NCBI GenBank assembly: GCA_964188305.1
Contig: OZ076894.1
Source: Podarcis bocagei
Lineage: Eukaryota
Direction: 5' to 3' (one strand)
Length of the DNA stretch: 64,000 nt
The notes under the pieces were generated by a model. The model saw only the letters and a program-made list of their open reading frames with translations. It was not told where the DNA came from and searched no databases. How positions within the stretch are numbered: the stretch's first letter is position 1; each line of letters opens with the position of its first letter. A program made the position numbers and the translations under genes. Of the stretch, positions 1 through 36,500 are shown piece by piece.

Positions 1-1861
1 GTTGAAGGTCAATGAAAGGCCGAATCCTCCCTATAGACCACCCTTACTTAGATACACTATAGCTTTTTAAAAACCGCTTCTTAAAAAGTACAAAATAATA
101 CTGAAATTATGCAGGTGTAACTCCCCCCCCCAATACAACATTTAGAGTAGCAACAAAGGCATTGTAAACAAGCAAACAAGCACTGTGTACTTGAAGGAAT
201 TCAACATGTTTCTCTTAGTAGGGTAAAGGCCAAATGTAGCTTGTCAACTAGTTGATTTCATTATCCCAATGAGGTGAAGTGCACGGATTGTGATCAGCGG
301 CAGGGCATGACCCGGTGGTGCCTGGGGTGGGTGGGAGCGTGCCACACAATGGGGAAAGGGCACGCCGTGGGGTGGAGTATGCCGTCGGAATGACTGCGTC
401 CTTCTCAGCCGTCCTTCCTCGGATCTTAATCACAATCAGAGGCGTAGAGTGAGGGGTGCTGGGGGGGTGCATCGCCCCAGGTGCAATTTTGTGAGGGGGG
501 TGCTGGGTGCCAGAGCTGCTGCATCCTTCTCAGCTGCAGGGCATTAACTTCACAGTATTTCACATGCAGGGGAGAGATGTGGCAGCTTCGTGCACCAACC
601 CCACACTGCTTTTGTGGGAATTGTGGGACCTGTAGGGCACTCAAGCCACTGCGTCCCCCTCAGCCACCCTTTGGCTGGAGGGCACCCAGAAGAGATGTGG
701 CAGCTTGGGCACCCTGTAAAAGCAGTGAGAGGCTGCAAGAGCAGTGTGGAGCCAGCGCATGGAGCCGCCACATCTCTCCCTTGCATGTGAAATACTGTGA
801 AGAAATTGTCCTGGCACTTTTCAAACTGTGTTGCTTGAAATGCACAGTTCAGCATTTTCCCCAGCTACCACTGTTGCCGTCTTCCACATCACAGTATCAT
901 TTATATTACAGCTGTATGAGAGGACTAAAAAATTCTAAATAGGCCAAGGCTTTACAACCGAAAGAGGGTATCTCTTCTCCATCATTGAACCAGCCAGAAA
1001 TACACGTCAGCATTTTTCTTAGTTGGGAATCAAAACGTGTACTTCCAACATCTACACGTCACAATGAATAACTGACTGTACTTCCCCAATGCCTGGAAGC
1101 ATTTACAACCTTCCTCAGATCTTAATCACAATTACAGGCGTAGGTTGGGGCATGCTGGGGGGGACATCACCCCAGGTGCAGTCTTGGGAGGGGGCCACAG
1201 GGTGCCAGAGCTGCTGAATCCTTCACAGTTGGAGAGACGCAGCAGCTCCGTGTGCCGGCCCCACACTGCTTTTGAGGGCAGTGCAGGACCTGCAGGGTGC
1301 CCAAGCCACCGCATCTCTTCTGGGTGCCCTTTAGCTGGAGGGTGGCTATGGGGAACACTGAGGGTCCCACGTTGCCTGCAAAAGCAGTGCGGGGCCAGCA
1401 CATAAAGCCACCGCACCCCTCTGGCTGAGAAGGAAGCAGAAGCTCTGGTGCCCTCTGCGCCGCTCCCCCCCCCCCAACAGTTCCCCCTCCACTATACCTC
1501 TGAATGTGATTAAAAACTGCTTCCAGGCATTTGAGAAGTTCAGTCAGTTATTCATTGTGATGCGTAGATGTTGGAAGTTAGAATGGTACTGTGATGTGGC
1601 AGACAGCAACGCTGGGAAACCGCTGCAATGTGCATTTCAAGCAACGCAGTTTGAAAAGAGGCAGGGCAATTTCTTCACAGTATTTCACATGCAAGGGAAG
1701 AAGAGTGCGGGAGGAAGGGGGAGAAGCCCCATGCTGCTTTAAGGCAGGGAAGGAGGCAAACAGGTCCACCATCCTTTAGAGTTCCAAGGCTCCTATACTA
1801 GGGGCGTCGTCTTGTGCTCTCCTTTAAGTTGGCTCACGCAGGATCCAGAAAGCCCCAGTTC
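1..1861 (-). other. RAPGEF2: RAPGEF2 3' UTR (probably continues beyond the window)
   Basis: Follows the stop codon; I did not find a minus-strand AATAAA in this interval; interrupted by the composite insertion at 295-1502. Confidence 0.75.
295..1502. mobile_element. Composite non-autonomous hAT-like element carrying inverted host-gene fragments
   Basis: 8-bp flanking direct repeat ATTGTGAT (287-294) / AATGTGAT (1503-1510); ends CAGCGGC... and ...CTATACCTCTG; inverted copies of the right end at 437 and 1133, each preceded by inverted flank ending TTAATCACAAT. Confidence 0.6.
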
Positions 1862-1887
1862 TTAGACGGCAGAGACTTGCTCATCTT
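1862..1887 (-). CDS. RAPGEF2: RAPGEF2 terminal coding exon 24 (EDEQVSAV*), class I PDZ-binding motif SAV
   Basis: TTTGCAG|AA GAT GAG CAA GTC TCT GCC GTC TAA; the 24 exons sum to 4476 nt (1491 aa plus stop). Confidence 0.95.
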
Positions 1888-2182
1888 CTGCAAACACAAC
1901 AGGATAGGAGGTAAATACATCTCAAGGTATTTAGAACTAAAATAGCCAATGTATTTATATGTTAGGCTTGTTCACTTGTAACACTAAACCCATAGTGTAG
2001 CATGCACATTCGCTCTCCATGCCCTCTCCTGTGCAGCCAGGATCAGGAAAAGGTGGTAAATACCAGCCATGAATTCTGGCTAGTTGGTACATAGGAATCA
2101 GATATTAGAGTTTAACTAACCAAAGTATGTTTTAAAACAAGCCAGTTTCATAACCTAAGGTTTTAAAGTTGGTCTGTTTAGA

Positions 2183-2630
2183 ACAGGGCTGGCAAACCTG
2201 TGGCATACTGACTAATCTTGACCCACAAGGCCATTTCCCACACCCACTTGTCCATCAGCTAGTATCACTGAGTGAAATCAGCTGCTTATTACAAGGGCAA
2301 AGTACCTCCCTCTGTTATCTGTTTCAACAGCATGTTCACCTGGTGAGCAGAGAGTTATAGGATCTGGCTGGTAACAGGCATACTCAGCCAAAGCCCTGCA
2401 GTACACTTTAAACCACTGGTTGGGCTGTTTGCAAAAGGGCTTTCAAATATCTGTTCATGGTGCTCTGAAGTCCCAAAAGTGCAGGCTTCAAAGCACAATG
2501 CTACCTGATGCCCTTATGACATCAGGTGATTGACAAGTGGACAGCACTACGCACATGTTAAATTACACCCTCCAGGGGTGGGGAGATAAAGATTTGGTCT
2601 ACCAGTCAGAAAAATGTCCCCAACCCACTT
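2183..2630. mobile_element. Old hAT-like MITE; related inverted copy near 26400-26560
   Basis: Starts CAGGGCTGGCAAACCTGTGGC; the internal ATCAGGTGATTGACAAGTGGACAG is matched in reverse by CTGTCCACCTGTAAATCACCTG near 26437. Confidence 0.35.
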
Positions 2631-5383: not shown

Positions 5384-5935
5384 ATTTATATCCTGAAATC
5401 CTATAGCAAGATTTATTCAAATCCTTTTATCTCCTGCTCTCTAACACCAGCATCTCCACCTTTTTATATCCCTAGACAAGTTTAAATCTGCATTAGTAAT
5501 TGAGGCATAGAAGGAAATTGTGCTAAACAACAAATTGCAGTTGTTCCTGATGGAGGTATAGGGCAGAGCACACTAGGGCTATATTATTGACATACACAAA
5601 GAGAGAAAACTGTACCCCCATATTATAAGACATTGGACTAAGCATATTAACAAACTAGAAAGGAAAAGAAAACCAGAGTTTATGTTAATGACTGAAATGT
5701 GGGCAGTTCTGAGGCAAGATAAAAAAATAATAACTAAAAAATAACAATGGAATATCTGCAGGAGGAAGCATCACTTCAGCACAAAAGGCTTTACGGAAAA
5801 AGCAAAACACAAGTTAAGACTATGAGCTGGCTATATGTTTTGCTCAAAAAAAGATTAAGGAAAAATATTTGTAAAATAAATTCATATTTATAGCAAATAT
5901 GTAGGATACTTTGTGGTAGACAAAGGTAAACTTAC

Positions 5936-6495
5936 CAATAAGACCCTTTGTATTACTTGTTGACACAGCTATATGAGCTGGCATGGGAACTGGCTTTGAA
6001 TCCTCTGCTGTCATAGATGTTATGCTACTGGTTTCAGCTTCAATTGACACATCCTTCCCACCCCTCCGTTTTATGGTACCTGTATCACCTTCAGAGTCCT
6101 CTCCCCAGTAGCCTGTGGAGGATGCCCAGCTTGCTCTGGACTGTGCTTGATCAAGGCCCTCCCTACCTTGACTCTGCCTGCCATACTTTGTGCCATGATC
6201 GGAGAACATCATCGGGTCCATGTGGCTGCCTGAGGCCCACAGTCCTGCCCCATCGCCTGAACTATCGAAATGAGCATGTCCAAAAGGAAGAATCTCCCAA
6301 CTTCGCTGGTGCTGTATTGTCTGTATGTTGTCATGGGAACCACTTGAACAAGAAGTCCAGCTGCCACGGCCACTATCCGCTGCATCAAGTGATGCTCGAT
6401 CTCCCTGATCCTGTGACAGCTCCTCAGTGCTAGGAGAAGAAAGCATGGTTGCCCCAGCATACAAGCCTCTATTCTCTGACAGTGGTGGGTAGTAG
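5936..6495 (-). CDS. RAPGEF2: RAPGEF2 exon 22 ([10 protein letters not shown]...TKGLI), includes DSGRGS beta-TrCP-type degron
   Basis: ORF 5844..6590; TCTAG acceptor, G|GTAAGT donor; 560 nt. Confidence 0.96.
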
Positions 6496-10799: not shown

Positions 10800-11260
10800 C
10801 TTTAAATAAAAAGTAGAATTAAGATTACAGTTAAGACTACCTCAAGAGTACTTGATTTTATATTAAACGGTGTCCAGAAGAATGATCAATGATGGAAAAG
10901 AGATATCCTCTCTTGGTTGAAAAGCCTTGGAATTTTTTATTCCTCTCATTCAGCTATAATATACTACCACAAACTATAGTAAAATGATGCCCTAATCAGC
11001 AGTTGGAGAGCCAATTAGGTAATGTATGCCATTTAAGAAACAAGTACCACATATGCCAACTGTAATATTGTCTACAATTTGCAATGGCATGGAATAACTT
11101 GTTTTCTAGTGATCAGCTTGATTAGAAACACATACTTCCCTCAATGATGCTGTGGCCAAGCCTAAGCCTGAGGGACAGTTAAGCTGTAGGCTAAATAAAG
11201 ATAAATTAACAGCTCATTTGCCATGACTGAGGTGCACACCCAACTAAGAAAAATGCTCAC

Positions 11261-11484
11261 ATGTATTGCTGGCTGGTTCACATTGTAGAGAGAGTGCCTG
11301 AAGGCTCTCTTCATCCATTTCCAGATCCAAATTGGAGAGATACTGCTTGACTTTCCGAGCCATCTGAGCATCTTCATATAGCTTTTTGGCATTGAGGAAG
11401 GAGCTGCGGCGGACCCGCTTTTTATGTCCACCCGTTTGTGCAACATCAAGGACTGCTGCATTTGTACTGCCTTGACTGAGAGAC
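11261..11484 (-). CDS. RAPGEF2: RAPGEF2 exon 18 ([11 protein letters not shown]...QCEPASNT)
   Basis: Manual translation in a frame other than the listed ORF; CCCCAG acceptor, T|GTGAGC donor; 224 nt. Confidence 0.95.
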
Positions 11485-13431: not shown

Positions 13432-14242
13432 CTGCAAGTGAGAGCCATGAGTATTGAAGCATGGATTTAAGGAAGAGACAGAGAGATTATAAGCTCAGAA
13501 AGAAAGGATCAGACTTCAGGACAAGCAGTACCAGAAAGCCCAGAACAGCCTTCTCTCAATCAGTCAGCATAATACATTAAATAGGTGTCTATAGAGTGCC
13601 CATAAGATTAAAGCTCATTTCACATTAAACTGAATTCACCTTGGATTACTTACACCTTTAGCATAAAATAGTGTTCTAAAATCTGGAGTGAATTTTGTTT
13701 CTGTCTTCTTTCTGCTTTTCTGCTTTCACATAATATAATTTCGTTTTAAAACATTTATTCATTCAATATGCATTTCCTATACATTGAACCAAAGGGGATA
13801 TTTTAACTATCCCAACTAATTCAATGCAAACTCTGCTTATATCTACTTTATCTAAGTAAGAATAAGACTAGTGATTAAATATCTATTATTTCTCTTGTTC
13901 TCCATGACCTTTAAACAATGAACGTAACATAAATTACGCAATGACAGGCAAGAGCCATTTCCATCTGTACTGCCTTTTCCTGATGGGGGCATTTGATTGG
14001 TTGCAACACTTATCCACCCCTGTGAATCAGTTAATTTGCACAACATTATAATTACAGGCCAGACAAGAGGGGAAATGTATTACTTGAATATTTCTTAAAA
14101 CTCAAAACTTGTAAAACAATGGCTTCAGTCTAGCAAGTGTATGCGTCATAATTATTATAATAGTTTAAGTTATACTATGAGATTTCTGAAGCAGTCTTCA
14201 ACACTGAACTCTTGAACTGCTTTTCTTGTTAATTGCTTTTTG

Positions 14243-15540: not shown

Positions 15541-18419
15541 CTAAAGAATGAATTTTAAAAGATGTTGAGGGTTTTAATCTCTGTTCAAAATGACACCTGC
15601 ATTTGCAGCATCACAAACATATGTTCCTGTATACAATCTTCTGAAGTAAAACTAAATGCATATCATATCATATTTAGCAACTGACAAATGTTGACACTGG
15701 TAAACAAAAACACTGCTTTCAGAGATTATGCACCATAAAATTGTAGGTCTTTTCTGAACTGCAATGTTCAAGCAATATTTGTGAGTTGAAGAATCATCAA
15801 AAGATTATGGTAGCAGTGGTATGGCTTTCCTGTCTTACCAAAAGTGTTCTCAGATCTATTACAACATTGCTTTCCAAACACTGTTGGAGCAACAGACACT
15901 TCTATAAACAAGGACCATTTTTAGTACAAAGATGTGGCTATGATGATCAGTAAGTGTTTGTTACTGCCAGATGGAAGTATTGTAATGAGTAATACAGTAA
16001 AGTCTATTCAGAAACTGCAGCTGTAAAATGCTGTGAGTCATTCCCTTAGTATACTAGCAAAAGAAGCATGTTATTACCAGAGGTTTAGAAGAGACATAAC
16101 CAGCTCATTTGGATGCACTGGTGATATTGATTATAAAAGCCCTCTGTTGTCCGAGACATAGATATCTGACATTCAGCCTTGCTTTCTGTAGTCAGTTGAA
16201 ATGGTCAACAAAAATGTCTGAATTCAGTGATCCTAACATTAAATGTTTTAGAGCTGCAAACAATTTTTTACAGAGGCCACCAACTGTCAAATCTACTTTT
16301 CTCTCTCAGATGCCCATATCTTCATCCCCTTCACAACAAGTATTAGTTTCCCTTTTCATTAATTATTTTTATCTGGAGAACTGGTGCCTGAGATTATTGA
16401 CCACCTTTGATCCCCAAATCAAGTTTCATCAAGTATATTAGCAGAATAAGTTACAGTAATTTAACACAGAGGCATGAAATTTAACAAGGCATGAAAGTGA
16501 CCAGTATCAAATCCAGGCAGACAGTGTAACTTATTTTACTTAATTTGAGTTGGTGAAAAGAATTCCTGGGTTGGAACTCTATCAATAATGCCCCCAAATC
16601 ACAGTGTTCCATGCCCAGTCTTTTCTAAATATATTTAGCATCAATTTATGTAACTTTCCGAAATCACTGTCACCCATAGTGAAAAGCCAAAGGAGCATCA
16701 ACACTGTAAGAAAAGTGGGCATCCTGAGTGTACTGATTAAAAATCCCTATCTTGCCTATGTTCACATATCAGACTACAGGAAGGTTTAGTAGAAATGGCA
16801 TGAAGTTGTGGAGTGAGGAGTGCTTGAGAGAGGGATTCAGACTGTGAGGATTCTGTCAGGAGGGTTCGTTCTGACACGTGGCAGAGCTGAGGAGAGCCGA
16901 GAACTCTCAGTATATGCTCTAAGGTTCTGAATCGCAGAACACTGTTAAAACAGAAAAGGCACAGTCTCCCACGGTGTTTACAGGAAAAAGGGTCCTCAGA
17001 GGGAATACTCTGACATGAAAGTGATTCCCAGGCCAAAGAGGATTTGGGGGTTTGTAAGAAAACAGTCCAGTTAAAATCCTAAATTCCTGAAGTGTGTGTG
17101 GAAAAGTCTGATCTATGAAAGATATGTAAAAGAAAGTAACCTTAAGCCTCAACAGCATACAGCCTATAACCTGAAACAGTATACATTTTAATAAAAAGCA
17201 ACAGCACTGTGCCATGAACAACCTCACTGTTTGATACATTTCTGTGGAAGAAAAAGAACCAAAAACTCCTTGTTTACATCTGTTATAATGAAGTTTGTTT
17301 GCAACCTGTTTTCCCCAAAGAAAAACCCACTGTCACTCGTGATTCATTCTCTATTGGGGGAATTCACCTGAGGGAAGGGAAACTGAGGGCTGGCACAGCG
17401 GTGCCAGGGAGGGAGAGTGCTGTTGCGTCGTCCCAGAAGTCCCTCTACATCGCCTGCTAGTTGCAAATGGTAATATGTCAAGACCAATGCTATCAATACT
17501 TGCTGAAAATGCTAATAAATGCAACAAAGCAAAGGTTTCCTTACCAAGGAAGCCTTCAAATACAGTCTAGGGACTGTAATTGCATTCAAAAGCTGAATAG
17601 CAGGCTCACATGAGGCCTAAACAACAACCAAATGTGCTTCATACAAAGTGACAATCTGTTTTGAAATGACCCTTTCAAAAGGAAGGTAACCGGAAAAATC
17701 AGAAGTGTACTTTTTGTGGGGGTAGGAAGGAGGAGAACCAAAGATTTAAGGCTGCCTTGTACCACCAACAGTCTAACAATTAGCTTCTACTGCATTAAGT
17801 TAAAAACCTGTGTAACCTATAACTGGGATTTTGCATGCCAACATGCAAACCTTTTAAATAATACTAAATGGATTCATACAGGACTGTGTGCAGTCTTTCA
17901 CACATAAAACATACTCCATGGTTGCATACTAAGTGGAAACAGAGAAAGATAAATGACTTCTTTTGTAATTTTGCTTTTTCCAAGTCTGTTCCAAAGGATA
18001 TTTTGATTTCTAGAGATAACAAATGCTTATAAAAATGACAAACACAACAAAGACTAATACATTTATAATGACACACGTGATCATGGAGTAGAGTCTACTT
18101 TCATCAGATATATCATTATGATGTTAGCAATGACAAGCTTGCAATGCTAATTTAAACAGCTTTTCATGGAAGAATCCTCTAGCCTTTCAACCAGTCTTGC
18201 TCTTTTTGGATTAGGATTTTGTCTAAAGCTGCTGCTGCGGACTGTTAAATTAATGAAATATTACTATTGTAGTATTAAATTACTAATTCATAAAACAGTA
18301 AAATGTACACATAGTATTTTTCTTAAAATTTAGTATCATCATTATGAAGCATCTATTTACACTTTATTTCTTATAAACTGTATGCAAAATCATTGGGGGG
18401 GTGATCTAGTCTTGTTTAC

Positions 18420-30817: not shown

Positions 30818-30953
30818 NNNNNNNNNNNNNNNNNNNNNNNNNNNNNNNNNNNNNNNNNNNNNNNNNNNNNNNNNNNNNNNNNNNNNNNNNNNNNNNNNNN
30901 NNNNNNNNNNNNNNNNNNNNNNNNNNNNNNNNNNNNNNNNNNNNNNNNNNNNN
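30818..30953. other. Assembly gap (136 N)
   Basis: Run of N. Confidence 0.99.
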
Positions 30954-31832: not shown

Positions 31833-32564
31833 CACTGATATCACACACTAAATGCTGATATCGCACACCCAACGCTGATATCACACACCCAACGCTGATA
31901 TCACACACCCAACGCTGATATCACACACCCAATGCTGATATCGCGCACCCAACGCTGTTATCACACACCCAACACTAATATCACACGACCAAACCAGACA
32001 GCACACTATCGCTTTCACTCCTGACTCTCCTCAACTCCTCTGATCAAAAGATGCTCTACGCCAAGCTGGCAGTTTTAGAACACGGAGGGTGGGGCAGTTG
32101 GCAGTTATAGATCACTGCAGTTGCTGCAACTAATTTGCATCTGATGTTATCTGTCAAACGCTGATATCGCACACCCAACGCTGATATCGCAGACCCAACG
32201 CTGATTTCGCACACCCAATGCTGATATCGCACACCCAACGCTGATATCGCACACCCAACGCTGATATCGCACACCCAACGCTGATATCGCACACCCAACG
32301 CTGATATCGCACACCCAACGCTGATATCGCACACCCAGCGCTGATATCGCACACCCAGCGCTGATATCACACACCCAACGCTGATATCACACGACCAAAC
32401 CAGACAGCACTCTATCACTTTCACTCTTGACTCTCCTCAACTCCTCTGATCAAAAGATGCTCTAAGCCAAGCTGGCAGTTTTAGAACACGGAGGGTGGGG
32501 CAGTTGGCAGTTATAGATCACTGCAGTTGCTGCAACTAATTTGCATCTGATGTTATCGGTCAAA
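31833..32564. repeat. Tandemly duplicated cassette: 20-bp minisatellite plus 172-bp tail, two copies
   Basis: Unit ACGCTGATATCGCACACCCA about x8 (31833-31986) and x12 (32158-32392); tails 31987-32158 and 32393-32564 differ at about 5 sites. Confidence 0.93.
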
Positions 32565-34865: not shown

Positions 34866-36500
34866 CAGTGGTACCCCGCAAGACGAATGCCTCGCAAGAC
34901 GGAAAACCCGCAAGACGAAAGGGTTTTCTGTTTTGGAGGCGCTTCGCAAGACGAATTTCCCTATGGGCTTGCATCGCAAGACGAAAGCCCATAGGGAAAT
35001 GCTGGCGGTCGGGAGCAAAGACTTTCGCCCACAGCCGGCCTTCAGAAGAGGACCTCTTCTGAAGGCCGGCGGGGGGCAAAAGTCTTTGCTCCCCCCCGCC
35101 TGCCTTCCCCCCCCCCCGCCTGCCCCGGGCGATCTTAAAATGCTGGCGGGCGGGAGCGAAGCGTTCGCTGCCGACCCCCAGCATTTTAAAATCTCCCCGG
35201 GACAGCAGAGAAGTCGGGAGCATTTTAAAATCTCCCCGTGTCCCGGGGAGATTTTAAAATGCTGGGGGGCTGCCGACCCCCAGCATTTTAAAATCTCCCC
35301 GGGACAGCAGAGACTTCTCTGTCCCGGGGAGATTTTAAAATGCTGGGGGTCAGGAGCGAAGCGTTCGCTGCCGACCCCCAGCATTTTAAAATCTCCCCGT
35401 GTCCCGGGGAGATTTTAAAATGCTGGGGGTCGGGAGCGCTTCGCTGCCGACCCCCAGCATTTTAAAACGCTGTTCCGAAGCGGGGGGCGGGAACAGCTGC
35501 CGCAGCCGCCCCGCTTCGGAACGCTGTTCCGAAGCGGGGAGGGGGGGCGGGAACAGCTGCCGCAGCCGCCCCGCTTCGGAACGCTGTTCCGAAGCGGGGA
35601 GGGGGGGCGGGAACATCTGCCCCAGCCGCCCCACTTCGGAACGCTGTTCCGAAGCGGGGAGGGGGGGCGGGAACATCTGCCCCAGCCGCCCCACTTCGGA
35701 ACGCTGTTCCGAAGCGGGGAGGGGGGCGGGAACATCTGCCCCAGCCGCCCCACTTCGGAACGCTGTTCCGAAGCGGGGAGGGGGGGCGGGAACAGCTGCC
35801 CCAGCCGCCCCACTTCGGAACGCTGTTCCGAAGCGGGGAGGGGGGCGGGAACATCTGCCCCAGCCGCCCCACTTCGGAACGCTGTTCCGAAGCGGGGAGG
35901 GGGGGCGGGAACATCTGCCCCAGCCGCCCCACTTCGGAACGCTGTTCCGAAGCGGGGAGGGGGGGCGGGAACATCTGCCCCAGCCGCCCCACTTCGGAAC
36001 GCTGTTCCGAAGCGGGGAGGGGGGGCGGGAACACCTGCCCCAGCCGCCCCACTTCGGAACGCTGTTCCGAAGCGGGGCTGGGGGCGGGAACACCTTCTGA
36101 AGGCGGGCAGGGGGCGAAAGTCTTTGTCCCCCCTGCCTGCCTTCCCAGGGGCTTTTAAATCGCCCCGGACAGCGGAGAAGTCCTCCGCTGTCCGGGGCGA
36201 TTTTAAAATGCCGCCCACCAGCATTTTAAGATCGCCTGGACAGCGGAGAAGTCCTCCGCTGTCCCGGGGTTTTTTAAAATGCTGGGGGTGGGAAGAAAAG
36301 CCCTTGTCCCCCCCCCCCCAGCCTTCAGAAGAGGTCCGGGGACAGACTGTCCCCGGACCTGGTCTGAAGGCGGTTTCCCTAGGAACGCATTAATTGATTT
36401 TCAATGCATTCCTATGGGAAACCGTGCATCGCAAGACGAAAAACTCGCAAGACGAAGAGACTTGCGGAACGAATTAATTTCGTCTTGCGAGGCACCACTG
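34866..36500. mobile_element. Non-autonomous Tc1/mariner (Tigger/pogo-like) DNA transposon
   Basis: TA|CAGTGGTACCCCGCAAGACGAA ... TTCGTCTTGCGAGGCACCACTG|TA; subterminal CGCAAGACG repeats at both ends; no transposase ORF. Confidence 0.88.
35467..36092. repeat. 59-60-bp GC-rich tandem array (about 10.5 units) inside the Tigger-like element
   Basis: Unit ACGCTGTTCCGAAGCGGGGAG(G)nCGGGAACA(T/G/C)CTGCCCCAGCCGCCCCACTTCGGA. Confidence 0.97.

Follow-up and report, generated by a model that had tools for sequence, protein, structure and literature searches.

How does a short element that entered the 3' untranslated region (UTR) of a gene come to carry inverted copies of that same UTR, and what might the arrangement do to the mRNA? 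The question is raised by a 1,208-bp insert (295-1502) in the 3' UTR of RAPGEF2, a conserved Rap1 exchange factor, in Podarcis bocagei, where it lies about 360-380 nt past the stop codon in the 64,000-nucleotide stretch of DNA that we analysed (the window). At the DNA level, the history of this insert is clear. As a whole, the best explanation, and one that we consider likely, is that a MITE inserted and was later enlarged in situ by repair, and that it would be transcribed into an mRNA predicted to fold back on itself.

Host gene, insertion site and empty site

An earlier reading made from the sequence only (the sequence-only reading) had placed the insertion in the RAPGEF2 3' UTR, and we reached the same assignment. 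A PDB sequence search with the PDZ exon could not separate RAPGEF2 from RAPGEF6, and the host gene was identified as RAPGEF2 by an exon search with source names, in which the exons were searched singly. The gene is on the minus strand, with its last coding piece (1862-1889, ...EDEQVSAV) closed by the stop codon TAA at 1862-1864 and its 3' UTR running from 1861 down beyond window position 1. On the stop-proximal side of the insert is a native UTR block (1503-1698, minus strand; block U) that is kept in snake and gecko and is the parent of the copies inside the insert, and on the other side is the native distal UTR (1-286, minus strand). The proximal RAPGEF2 3' UTR is almost invariant between snake and gecko, and a 64-nt UTR block has a single variable position across four outgroup sequences.

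The insertion had been proposed to be lineage-specific, with an hAT-type 8-bp duplication, and squamate UTRs to be the place to look for the empty site. This was found in four other squamate loci, from a snake (L001), a gecko (L002) and two Logan contigs (L003 and L005). In these, window position 1509 is joined straight to 294 with one copy of the 8-mer, 358-380 nt past the stop, and the distal UTR adjoins 1503 onward without interruption. For cross-species comparisons, places 778-823 were masked with N; database searches omitted 778-823, 537-573 and 1651-1698, while the window-only self-alignment, nhmmer and folding included 778-823.

The 8-bp direct repeat and the CAG...CTG ends that had been described as bounding 295-1502 are both present, as are the other sequence features described, each at the coordinates given. 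The left copy of the target-site duplication (287-294) reads ATTGTGAT and the right copy (1503-1510) reads AATGTGAT, with one later substitution, such that the two agree at 7/8 positions. Inverted 8-mers inside the insert (429-436 and 1125-1132) are ATCACAAT, which reads ATTGTGAT on the other strand, and so the duplication was originally 8/8. This 8-mer fits nTnnnnAn on either strand (T at position 2, A at position 7), a target preference stated for Hermes (PMC10368747). The element starts with CAGCGG at 295 and ends with CCTCTG at 1502, and its outer termini were compared with the hAT form YARNG: both begin CAGNG (CAGCG, and CAGAG on the other strand). Beyond this, the left terminus (295 onward) agrees with the right at just 7/15 bases. 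At 437 and 1133, the termini of the internal arms resemble the right end more closely (approximately 14/20). The terminus of the MITE family reads CAGAGGCGTAG...

No hAT transposase gene was found in 295-1502, which holds only short spurious frames with no protein relatives, as expected for a MITE. Likewise, nhmmer found no further copies of the family in the 64-kb window, and a protein-word search for other copies with the open frame of the complete MITE (1170-1547) was blank. With no other family copy found in these searches, the element is called a transposon on account of its duplication, its termini and the empty site. What landed in the RAPGEF2 3' UTR and duplicated ATCACAAT was a MITE of hAT type, non-autonomous and about 370 bp long, which is an imperfect palindrome and GC-rich. 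It did so in the lacertid lineage, once this had separated from snakes and geckos.

Sequence with palindromes and GC-rich hairpins is difficult to assemble, which raises the concern that repeats in this region were collapsed or joined chimerically. We regard such an artefact as very improbable, since the copies within the insert are 11-30% different from one another and have indels of their own, and since the antisense copy of block U (U', described below) holds ancestral bases that are missing from the native copy. Also arguing against it, 0.91 of sampled 31-mers were present in an independent sample of the same species (0.91-0.98 across three runs from two samples), and 0.51-0.66 were present in three related species. 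These relatives hold more than half of the 31-mers, which exceeds what the non-insert half alone could supply, and the insert is apparently kept across several wall-lizard species.

A mosaic of MITE arms and host segments

The insert is composed of three copies of the GC-rich palindromic MITE arm, two copies of the MITE inner hairpin, three pieces of stop-proximal flank and two pieces of an exon-intron junction. At its left is a degenerate MITE outer arm (S1, 295-412), which starts CAGCGGC, ends in the motif CTGCGTCCTTCTCAGCC and aligns collinearly to 437-541 with a score that was reached by 0/500 shuffles. It is followed by 24 nt of inverted stop-proximal flank (413-436) that includes one of the inverted 8-mers and matches 1109-1132 at 23/24 positions; as a longer unit, 413-467 is a direct copy of 1109-1163 (85%), made up of these 24 nt and then the MITE end. 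Next comes a partial second MITE (M2, 437-779), whose outer arm corresponds to the MITE left arm (437-536, 80.6% identical to 1133-1230) and whose inner palindrome is itself a hairpin (571-779, 74% identical to 1231-1421). Between the two is a 37-nt direct copy of native 1661-1698 (segment X, 537-573, 89%).

The antisense copy of block U, U', is in two parts. Its distal part (777-901) is an antisense copy of native 1582-1698, and its proximal part (1041-1132) is an antisense copy of native 1503-1578 that ends in the inverted 8-mer adjoining the MITE terminus. In the self-alignment, 777-861 pairs with 1614-1698 (85 nt, 91% complementary), 868-901 with 1582-1615 (85%) and 1041-1104 with 1515-1578 (91%), with BLAST E-values of 2e-34 to 6e-35; this bears out the proposal that 777-900 and 1041-1132 are antisense to the native UTR at 1503-1697. 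The two parts are separated by filler. First, 902-988 is derived from a RAPGEF2 intron (10886-10963, 80%, opposite strand). Second, 986-1027 is derived from an exon end and its 5' splice site (11239-11280, 93%, opposite strand), and the two fillers share TGA at their joint (986-988). These are followed by a 13-nt orphan (1028-1040) with no template found in the window. The parental source of both fillers spans 10886-11280 on the minus strand, where the exon ends in ...CAATACAT and is followed by gtgagc near 11262. Last, a complete, imperfectly palindromic and GC-rich MITE of 370 bp (M3, 1133-1502) adjoins the right target-site copy with its right end. It had been described as an imperfect hairpin and does form one, with arms (1186-1302 and 1351-1467) that are 71% complementary and 134 pairs in the minimum-free-energy fold.

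Three segments had gone unmentioned in the sequence-only reading: the patch of 139 nt that separates the two parts of U' (902-1040), segment X (the 37-nt direct copy, 537-573) and the third MITE arm, which is degenerate (295-412). An Rfam search of 824-1650 returned nothing above chance (MIR1437 at E = 0.17, where 23 bits fall short of the gathering score of 168).

Inverted homology is continuous from the MITE into both flanks, and a weak nhmmer match resembling the MITE occurs at 1657-1826, as might be seen if the whole palindrome (777-1698) were one long-TIR or foldback transposon and its arms of 'host UTR' were transposon-derived. We give this practically no weight and consider it refuted by the outgroups, in which 1503-1917 aligns continuously (79-84%) with the insert-free RAPGEF2 UTRs of snake, gecko and two more squamates. 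It follows from the same alignment that the portion of the weak match extending past 1698 is conserved UTR of the host, and the 'host UTR' is truly host, as had been claimed. A fourth MITE remnant at 1699-1826 was also considered and discarded, this being conserved host UTR in all four outgroups.

Comparison with the outgroups further indicates which copy has changed. Stretches of 7 nt and 17 nt have disappeared from native block U in this lizard, and the block has acquired at least 9 derived substitutions. U' retains ancestral bases as well as the 7-nt and 17-nt stretches since gone from the native copy (the ancestral 17 nt being in its proximal part, 1041-1132), and the polarised substitutions number 9 in the native copy and 4 in U'. 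Other lizard-specific changes are common to both. As judged from these alignments, the internal host-like segments are copies of this lizard's own UTR and of an exon-intron junction of the same gene.

Proposed break repair and template switching

For the growth of the insert, we propose that break repair, in one event or a few, later extended the MITE where it lay to 1,208 bp; the DNA fits one event or several. Once the DNA had broken at the distal end of the MITE, or close to it, the palindromic MITE would have folded back on itself and primed synthesis that crossed to the stop-proximal flank on the other side, yielding an antisense flank copy that exactly abuts the MITE terminus. The growing strand would then have changed template repeatedly, frequently at the inner-hairpin base of the MITE, adding the second partial MITE, two more pieces of flank and two pieces from about 10 kb upstream.

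Several features of the junctions are consistent with this. No nucleotide separates the inverted 8-mer from the MITE terminus. The parents of the flank copies lie 0-0.2 kb from the insert, and those of the fillers lie in the same gene, 9.4-9.8 kb off, their order being permuted and the pieces being joined at TGA and followed by the 13-nt orphan. At 412/413 the MITE motif resembles the flank imperfectly over about 10 nt (CCTTCYTCAG). Microhomology is clear at some junctions only, the others having 0-1 nt or the 13-nt orphan. Taken at the level of sequence, the cis-derived filler pieces in the mosaic support repair with template switching.

Transversion divergence differs among the copies: it is 5.5% for the host copies, 7-8% for M2 against M3 and 12-14% for left against right MITE arms. 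The left and right arms have about twice the transversions of the host copies, which suggests that the copying was primed by a palindrome already in place. The M3 left arm was also considered as a fresh inverted copy of the right arm, and this was rejected on transversion divergence. The sequence-only reading had held that the right end of the element was copied together with adjacent flank by template-switching repair. The repair part of that proposal is supported by the mosaic and its cis fillers, but the MITE arms beside the inverted host segments did not arise as fresh copies of the right end (12-14% against 5.5%).

If M2 (437-779) and M3 (1133-1502) were instead independent insertions of the same family, with host copies added by separate small duplications over a long time, the greater divergence of the MITE copies (74-81% identical, against 88-90% for the host copies) would be accounted for. 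However, the excess divergence is nearly all transitions, with transversions at 7-8% against 5.5% and CpG observed/expected down to 0.20-0.27. M2 also has neither a target-site duplication of its own nor a right arm. Moreover, its left arm carries the 24-nt inverted flank of M3 (23/24), which only copying can yield, and we consider separate insertions improbable.

Transposase activity might have made the inverted flank by another route, either through alternative transposition with ends on sister chromatids or through a hairpin that hAT cleavage formed on the flank and that was then replicated, or opened at a distance from its tip. Such a route would fit the way in which the inverted flank and inverted 8-mer meet the MITE terminus to the base, and excision of the hAT element Tam3 in Antirrhinum reportedly left inverted duplications of flanking DNA. 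Inverted flank duplications, usually of a few to tens of bp, are found in the excision footprints of Tam3 and Ac/Ds after the element departs. These cases resemble ours in having an hAT element, an adjacent flank that is inverted and duplicated, and a hairpin-based explanation; they differ in that here the copy measures about 216 nt and the element has stayed. Formation of hairpins on flanking DNA is, in addition, known for hAT transposases (PMC5499845). We nevertheless think a transposase origin unlikely, given that the element is still in place with a flank copy of just about 200 bp, and that the filler from 10 kb, the TGA-microhomology joint, the orphan 13-mer and the breakpoints inside the MITE are marks of repair synthesis.

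Repair at the MITE has two kinds of precedent. First, the mosaic fits repair of a break in situ, primed by fold-back and continued by template switching, of the gap-filling kind known from single-copy Pack-TIRs. Single-copy Pack-TIRs show a cis bias and breakpoint microhomology, hAT elements are their commonest carrier, and no move is needed after capture (Tan et al, 2021, PMC8277862). As in Pack-TIRs and Pack-hATs, a TIR element here has an interior of copied host DNA with identifiable parents nearby in cis and microhomology at some breakpoints. Unlike in Pack-TIRs, the cargo is mostly the element's own immediate flank, inverted and including a target-site copy, the carrier is partly duplicated and the whole sits in a 3' UTR (PMC8277862). 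The outgroup loci, all of them distant (snake-like and gecko-like), hold no orthologous element free of cargo. Second, fold-back inverted duplications are seeded by a short inverted repeat beside a DNA break, and divergent arms still work in long single-stranded DNA (PMC3834830, PMC10164571). The likeness is that a palindrome at a resected end self-anneals and primes synthesis, leaving a pre-existing inverted repeat at the centre. Known cases give chromosome-scale palindromes or dicentrics, whereas here synthesis would have ended after about 200 nt and been resolved locally by further template switches.

Predicted fold of the mRNA and its possible effects

Neither AATAAA nor ATTAAA occurs on the sense strand from the stop to the start of the window. 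In gecko and in one Logan contig (L003), the first canonical poly(A) signal is at +934 to +948, beyond the insertion site. The insert being upstream of the first likely poly(A) signal, the mRNA is predicted to contain it. The only hint of transcription is that six small runs, guessed to be RNA, contained 0.34-0.37 of the sampled 31-mers, compared to 0.41-0.56 in DNA runs of the same species.

In silico, folding of the minus strand gave the helices that had been described, with a minimum free energy for the sense strand of -720.3 kcal/mol against -502.3 +/- 10.6 for shuffles (z = -20.5). The antisense strand folds at -732 against -720 kcal/mol, such that the sense strand has no advantage. The host arms would form perfect helices of 28, 20 and 17 bp, with the most conserved UTR block within the 28-bp helix. 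The mRNA would thus form a nested stem-loop of about 1.4 kb, with about 170 pairs between the host arms and the 370-nt MITE hairpin at its tip. By analogy with other long inverted repeats in 3' UTRs, the foldback would most likely act as a substrate for ADAR and dsRNA-binding proteins and affect RAPGEF2 output modestly at most. The sequestering of the proximal UTR put forward in the sequence-only reading, like binding by ADAR or Staufen, is likewise a prediction.

Whether this has mattered to the lizard is a separate matter. We lean slightly towards the foldback being a neutral passenger that is transcribed, or bypassed by upstream polyadenylation, and is decaying with no regulatory consequence. 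The host arms are down to 87-90% identity (68-72% for the MITE arms) and the sense fold is no better than the antisense; nothing points to selection for pairing. With 9 polarised substitutions against 4, the native block has also changed no less than U'. Drift would give such a picture. Against neutrality, the surrounding UTR is well conserved, including the 64-nt block with one variable position in four outgroups, the insert is apparently retained in several species, and the best conserved block is in the longest perfect helix, though none of these points tests function.

A stronger reading, in our judgement decidedly unlikely, is that the insertion rewired post-transcriptional control of RAPGEF2 in lacertids, with the conserved block masked in the 28-bp duplex, edited, or part of a switch between alternative pairings. 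The antisense copy would sequester the most conserved proximal block, with a spare sense copy 1.1 kb away, and this would account for the native block now changing no more slowly than its junk copy. A separate part of this reading is that the exact abutment of inverted flank and MITE terminus could record a general route, in which palindromic MITEs, once cleaved, prime themselves and take up the flank on the other side.

Inverted Alu pairs (IRAlus) in human 3' UTRs, which bind Staufen1 and are edited by ADAR (e.g. PMC7566578), are the closest comparison for the RNA. Both have a long imperfect intramolecular dsRNA (here predicted) within one 3' UTR and repeats in opposite orientations. Unlike in IRAlus, which combine two independent repeat insertions, the arms in RAPGEF2 consist in part of conserved UTR belonging to the gene itself and of an antisense copy of that UTR. 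The internal copies are molecular fossils of the ancestral UTR, and the locus is an unusually clear record of repair at a transposon. If the foldback is transcribed, it would be a natural non-mammalian counterpart of 3' UTR inverted Alu pairs, and could be used to ask how long UTR dsRNA is tolerated, edited and exploited.

RAPGEF2 setting and empty insertion sites

RAPGEF2 exons were searched individually by reference. A large upstream exon (5934-6494) matches proteins named by NCBI as rap guanine nucleotide exchange factor 2 from Thamnophis (93%), Tinamus and Gekko, which identifies the gene as RAPGEF2. On the minus strand, a short last coding piece (1862-1889), preceded by an acceptor site, completes the reading frame (...EDEQVSAV) with a TAA stop at 1862-1864; the exon before it runs to 3400, where a gt donor follows. 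From the stop codon to window position 1, the sense strand contains neither AATAAA nor ATTAAA.

Within this 3' UTR, the 8-mers ATTGTGAT (287-294) and AATGTGAT (1503-1510) enclose a segment that starts with CAGCGG and ends with CCTCTG, in line with the sequence-only reading, which had described 295-1502 as bounded by an 8-bp direct repeat and CAG...CTG ends. Two internal inverted 8-mers (429-436 and 1125-1132) both still read ATTGTGAT on the opposite strand, indicating that the duplication was originally perfect; it agrees with nTnnnnAn, the target-site preference of Hermes, a hAT element (PMC10368747). Orthologous loci were obtained via protein matches from Thamnophis sirtalis, Gekko kuhli and two Logan contigs (L003 and L005). 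As L003 has a gecko-like and L005 a snake-like UTR layout, the four loci stand for only two outgroup clades. In every locus, the sequence matching window 1917/1960 to ~1509 joins that matching 294 to ~72 directly, and the alignments contain no counterpart of 295-1502 in any of the four (two clades). The gecko junction reads ...ATCTTAATCACAAT TGTAGCAC..., with the 8-mer present once. This is the empty site that the earlier reading had proposed to seek by aligning squamate RAPGEF2 UTRs. Because the outgroups lack the insert and carry a single 8-mer, the alignments identify 295-1502 as a lineage-specific insertion flanked by a genuine 8-bp target-site duplication. The insertion site lies 358-380 nt past the stop codon in the outgroup loci, and in the gecko and L003 the first canonical poly(A) signal (+934 to +948) is downstream of it.

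Of the sampled 31-mers of window 1-2400, three runs of this species, representing two samples, contained 0.91-0.98, and three related species contained 0.51-0.66. Since the non-insert half could supply only 0.50, the related species carry the insert at least in part.

Anatomy of the insert

Repeat pairs were identified using a repeat finder and self-BLAST (inverted-pair E-values near 1e-34). The inverted pairs join 777-861 with 1614-1698 (91%), 868-901 with 1582-1615 (85%) and 1041-1104 with 1515-1578 (91%), while the direct pairs join 413-467 with 1109-1163 (85%), 462-539 with 1157-1234 (82%), 571-655 with 1231-1315 (78%) and 536-573 with 1661-1698 (89%). An imperfect palindrome with 117-nt arms, 71% complementary, occupies 1133-1502, so that the inverted, nested layout and hairpin noticed earlier are both recovered. 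From left to right on the plus strand, the insert consists of S1, a degenerate copy of a MITE outer arm (295-412); a 24-nt inverted flank that includes an inverted 8-mer (413-436); the outer arm of a second MITE copy, M2 (437-536); X, a direct copy of native 1661-1698 (537-573); the M2 inner palindrome (571-779); the distal part of U', an antisense copy of the proximal UTR (777-901); a three-part patch of 139 nt (902-1040); the proximal part of U' (1041-1132); and M3, a complete MITE (1133-1502). The base of the MITE inner hairpin is a recurrent breakpoint: both S1 and the M2 outer arm end there, and a further break lies at the mirror position 779/780. S1, a short segment that adjoins the left target-site copy, has a CpG observed/expected ratio of 0.73 (0.20-0.27 in the other MITE copies).

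No further copy of the MITE family was found, either by nhmmer in the 64-kb window or by a protein-word search of the MITE frame, which says little about the genome as a whole. Other repeats in the window include an intronic GC-rich tandem array (35482-36092; 60-bp unit, 10.2 copies, 97% matches), whose unit contains a short hairpin (TTCGGAACGCTGTTCCGAA) and which adjoins an 80-bp palindromic repeat (35320-35467); this array may be a hairpin-array MITE. Two intronic arrays of a 20-bp tandem repeat lie at 31835-31986 and 32157-32392 (7.6 and 11.8 copies, 88-95% matches), and 136 consecutive N (30818-30953) mark an assembly gap or masking.

Native 1503-1917 aligns without a break to the outgroup UTRs (79-84%), which confirms the earlier claim that the insert carries an antisense copy of true host UTR and refutes the alternative that the palindrome 777-1698 is a single long-TIR transposon. 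A weak MITE-like match at 1699-1826 falls within UTR conserved in the outgroups and was dismissed as noise. In a six-way alignment, which took in U' as 824-901 plus 1041-1132 and left out 778-823, U' and the native copy have lizard-specific changes in common, and U' retains ancestral bases and stretches of 7 and 17 nt since lost from the native copy. The native losses are of 17 nt adjoining the target-site copy (1503-1530) and 7 nt at ~1600-1615; the outgroups retain both. Polarised by the outgroups, the native copy has 9 derived substitutions against 4 for U' (small numbers), suggesting that a UTR block near-invariant between snake and gecko has evolved in the lizard no slower than its presumably neutral copy. 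A block of ~64 nt just past the stop has 1 variable position across the four outgroup sequences (~13907-13975 in the Thamnophis locus, ~16230-16300 in the Gekko locus) and 3 derived changes in the lizard native copy (1629-1698); the lizard UTR has three copies of parts of it, ordered sense, antisense, sense.

The patch derives largely from RAPGEF2 itself. Its first piece (902-988) is copied from intron sequence at 10886-10963 (80%) and its second (986-1027) from a stretch spanning the end of an exon and its 5' splice site (11239-11280, 93%); the remaining 13 nt are an orphan. Relative to their sources, the copied pieces are in reversed order, and they meet at a common TGA. Since coding exon sequence forms part of one source, it is clear which way the copying went. 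The 42-nt second piece is antisense to the mRNA, covering the last 22 nt of the upstream exon and the first 20 nt of the intron.

Relative ages and a proposed fold-back repair route

Identity among the host-derived copies is 88-90%, and transversions amount to 5.5%. Identity between M2 and M3 is 74-81%, with transversions at only 7-8% and the excess divergence in transitions of CpG-depleted sequence (observed/expected down to 0.20-0.27), for which reason M2 and the flank duplication are probably similar in age. The internal copies differ from one another by 11-13%, several-fold above the 1.3-2.8% divergence that word shares imply for the related species, and from this we infer that the mosaic predates all three.

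The sequence-only reading had the element's right end and adjacent host UTR copied twice in inverted orientation. This stands for the host copies. It probably does not for the M3 left arm: left and right MITE arms are 68-72% identical with 12-14% transversions, more diverged than the host copies, making it unlikely that the M3 left arm is a fresh inverted right-arm copy made together with U'. Arm divergence, together with an inverted 8-mer that adjoins the M3 terminus without a single intervening base, fits fold-back from a pre-existing palindromic MITE. Under this scheme, a hAT-type MITE would have inserted in the RAPGEF2 3' UTR and later been enlarged in place: a freed 3' end of the MITE would fold back onto its other arm and prime synthesis outward into the opposite flank, with several template switches following. 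One event or a few, and a break by transposase cleavage or by hairpin stalling, would all be compatible. Such priming is known for short inverted repeats beside breaks (PMC3834830, PMC10164571), and the proposed switching resembles the way single-copy Pack-TIRs arise by gap filling, a process marked by cis bias and microhomology (PMC8277862). The mosaic and the copy ages support and sharpen, at the DNA level, the earlier suggestion of repair with template switching at a transposon end, and support reading the locus as a hAT-type MITE insertion that grew in place through repair by fold-back and template switching.

Predicted RNA fold

Sense RNA of 287-1697 has a predicted minimum free energy of -720.3 kcal/mol (dinucleotide shuffles -502.3 +/- 10.6; z = -20.5), and the antisense strand -732.4. 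The computed fold reproduces the nested stem-loop proposed earlier, with 103 predicted pairs between 777-901 and 1582-1698, 67 between 1041-1132 and 1503-1578, and 134 inside M3. Perfect host-arm helices would reach 28 bp (781-808 with 1667-1694), 20 bp and 17 bp, the longest containing the most conserved UTR block. By analogy, these duplexes are within the size range of inverted Alu pairs, known ADAR and Staufen substrates (PMC7566578). In addition, UTR segment 986-1027 could pair with the RAPGEF2 pre-mRNA 5' splice site (source 11239-11280). Transcription is hinted at only by six small runs, their type guessed as RNA, which contain 0.34-0.37 of the words.

As read from the sequence, the outcome is a mosaic with antisense copies of RAPGEF2's own UTR and exon-intron junction. 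Its RNA consequences are well-founded predictions, and the locus would join two known kinds, the single-copy Pack-TIR and the inverted-repeat 3' UTR.
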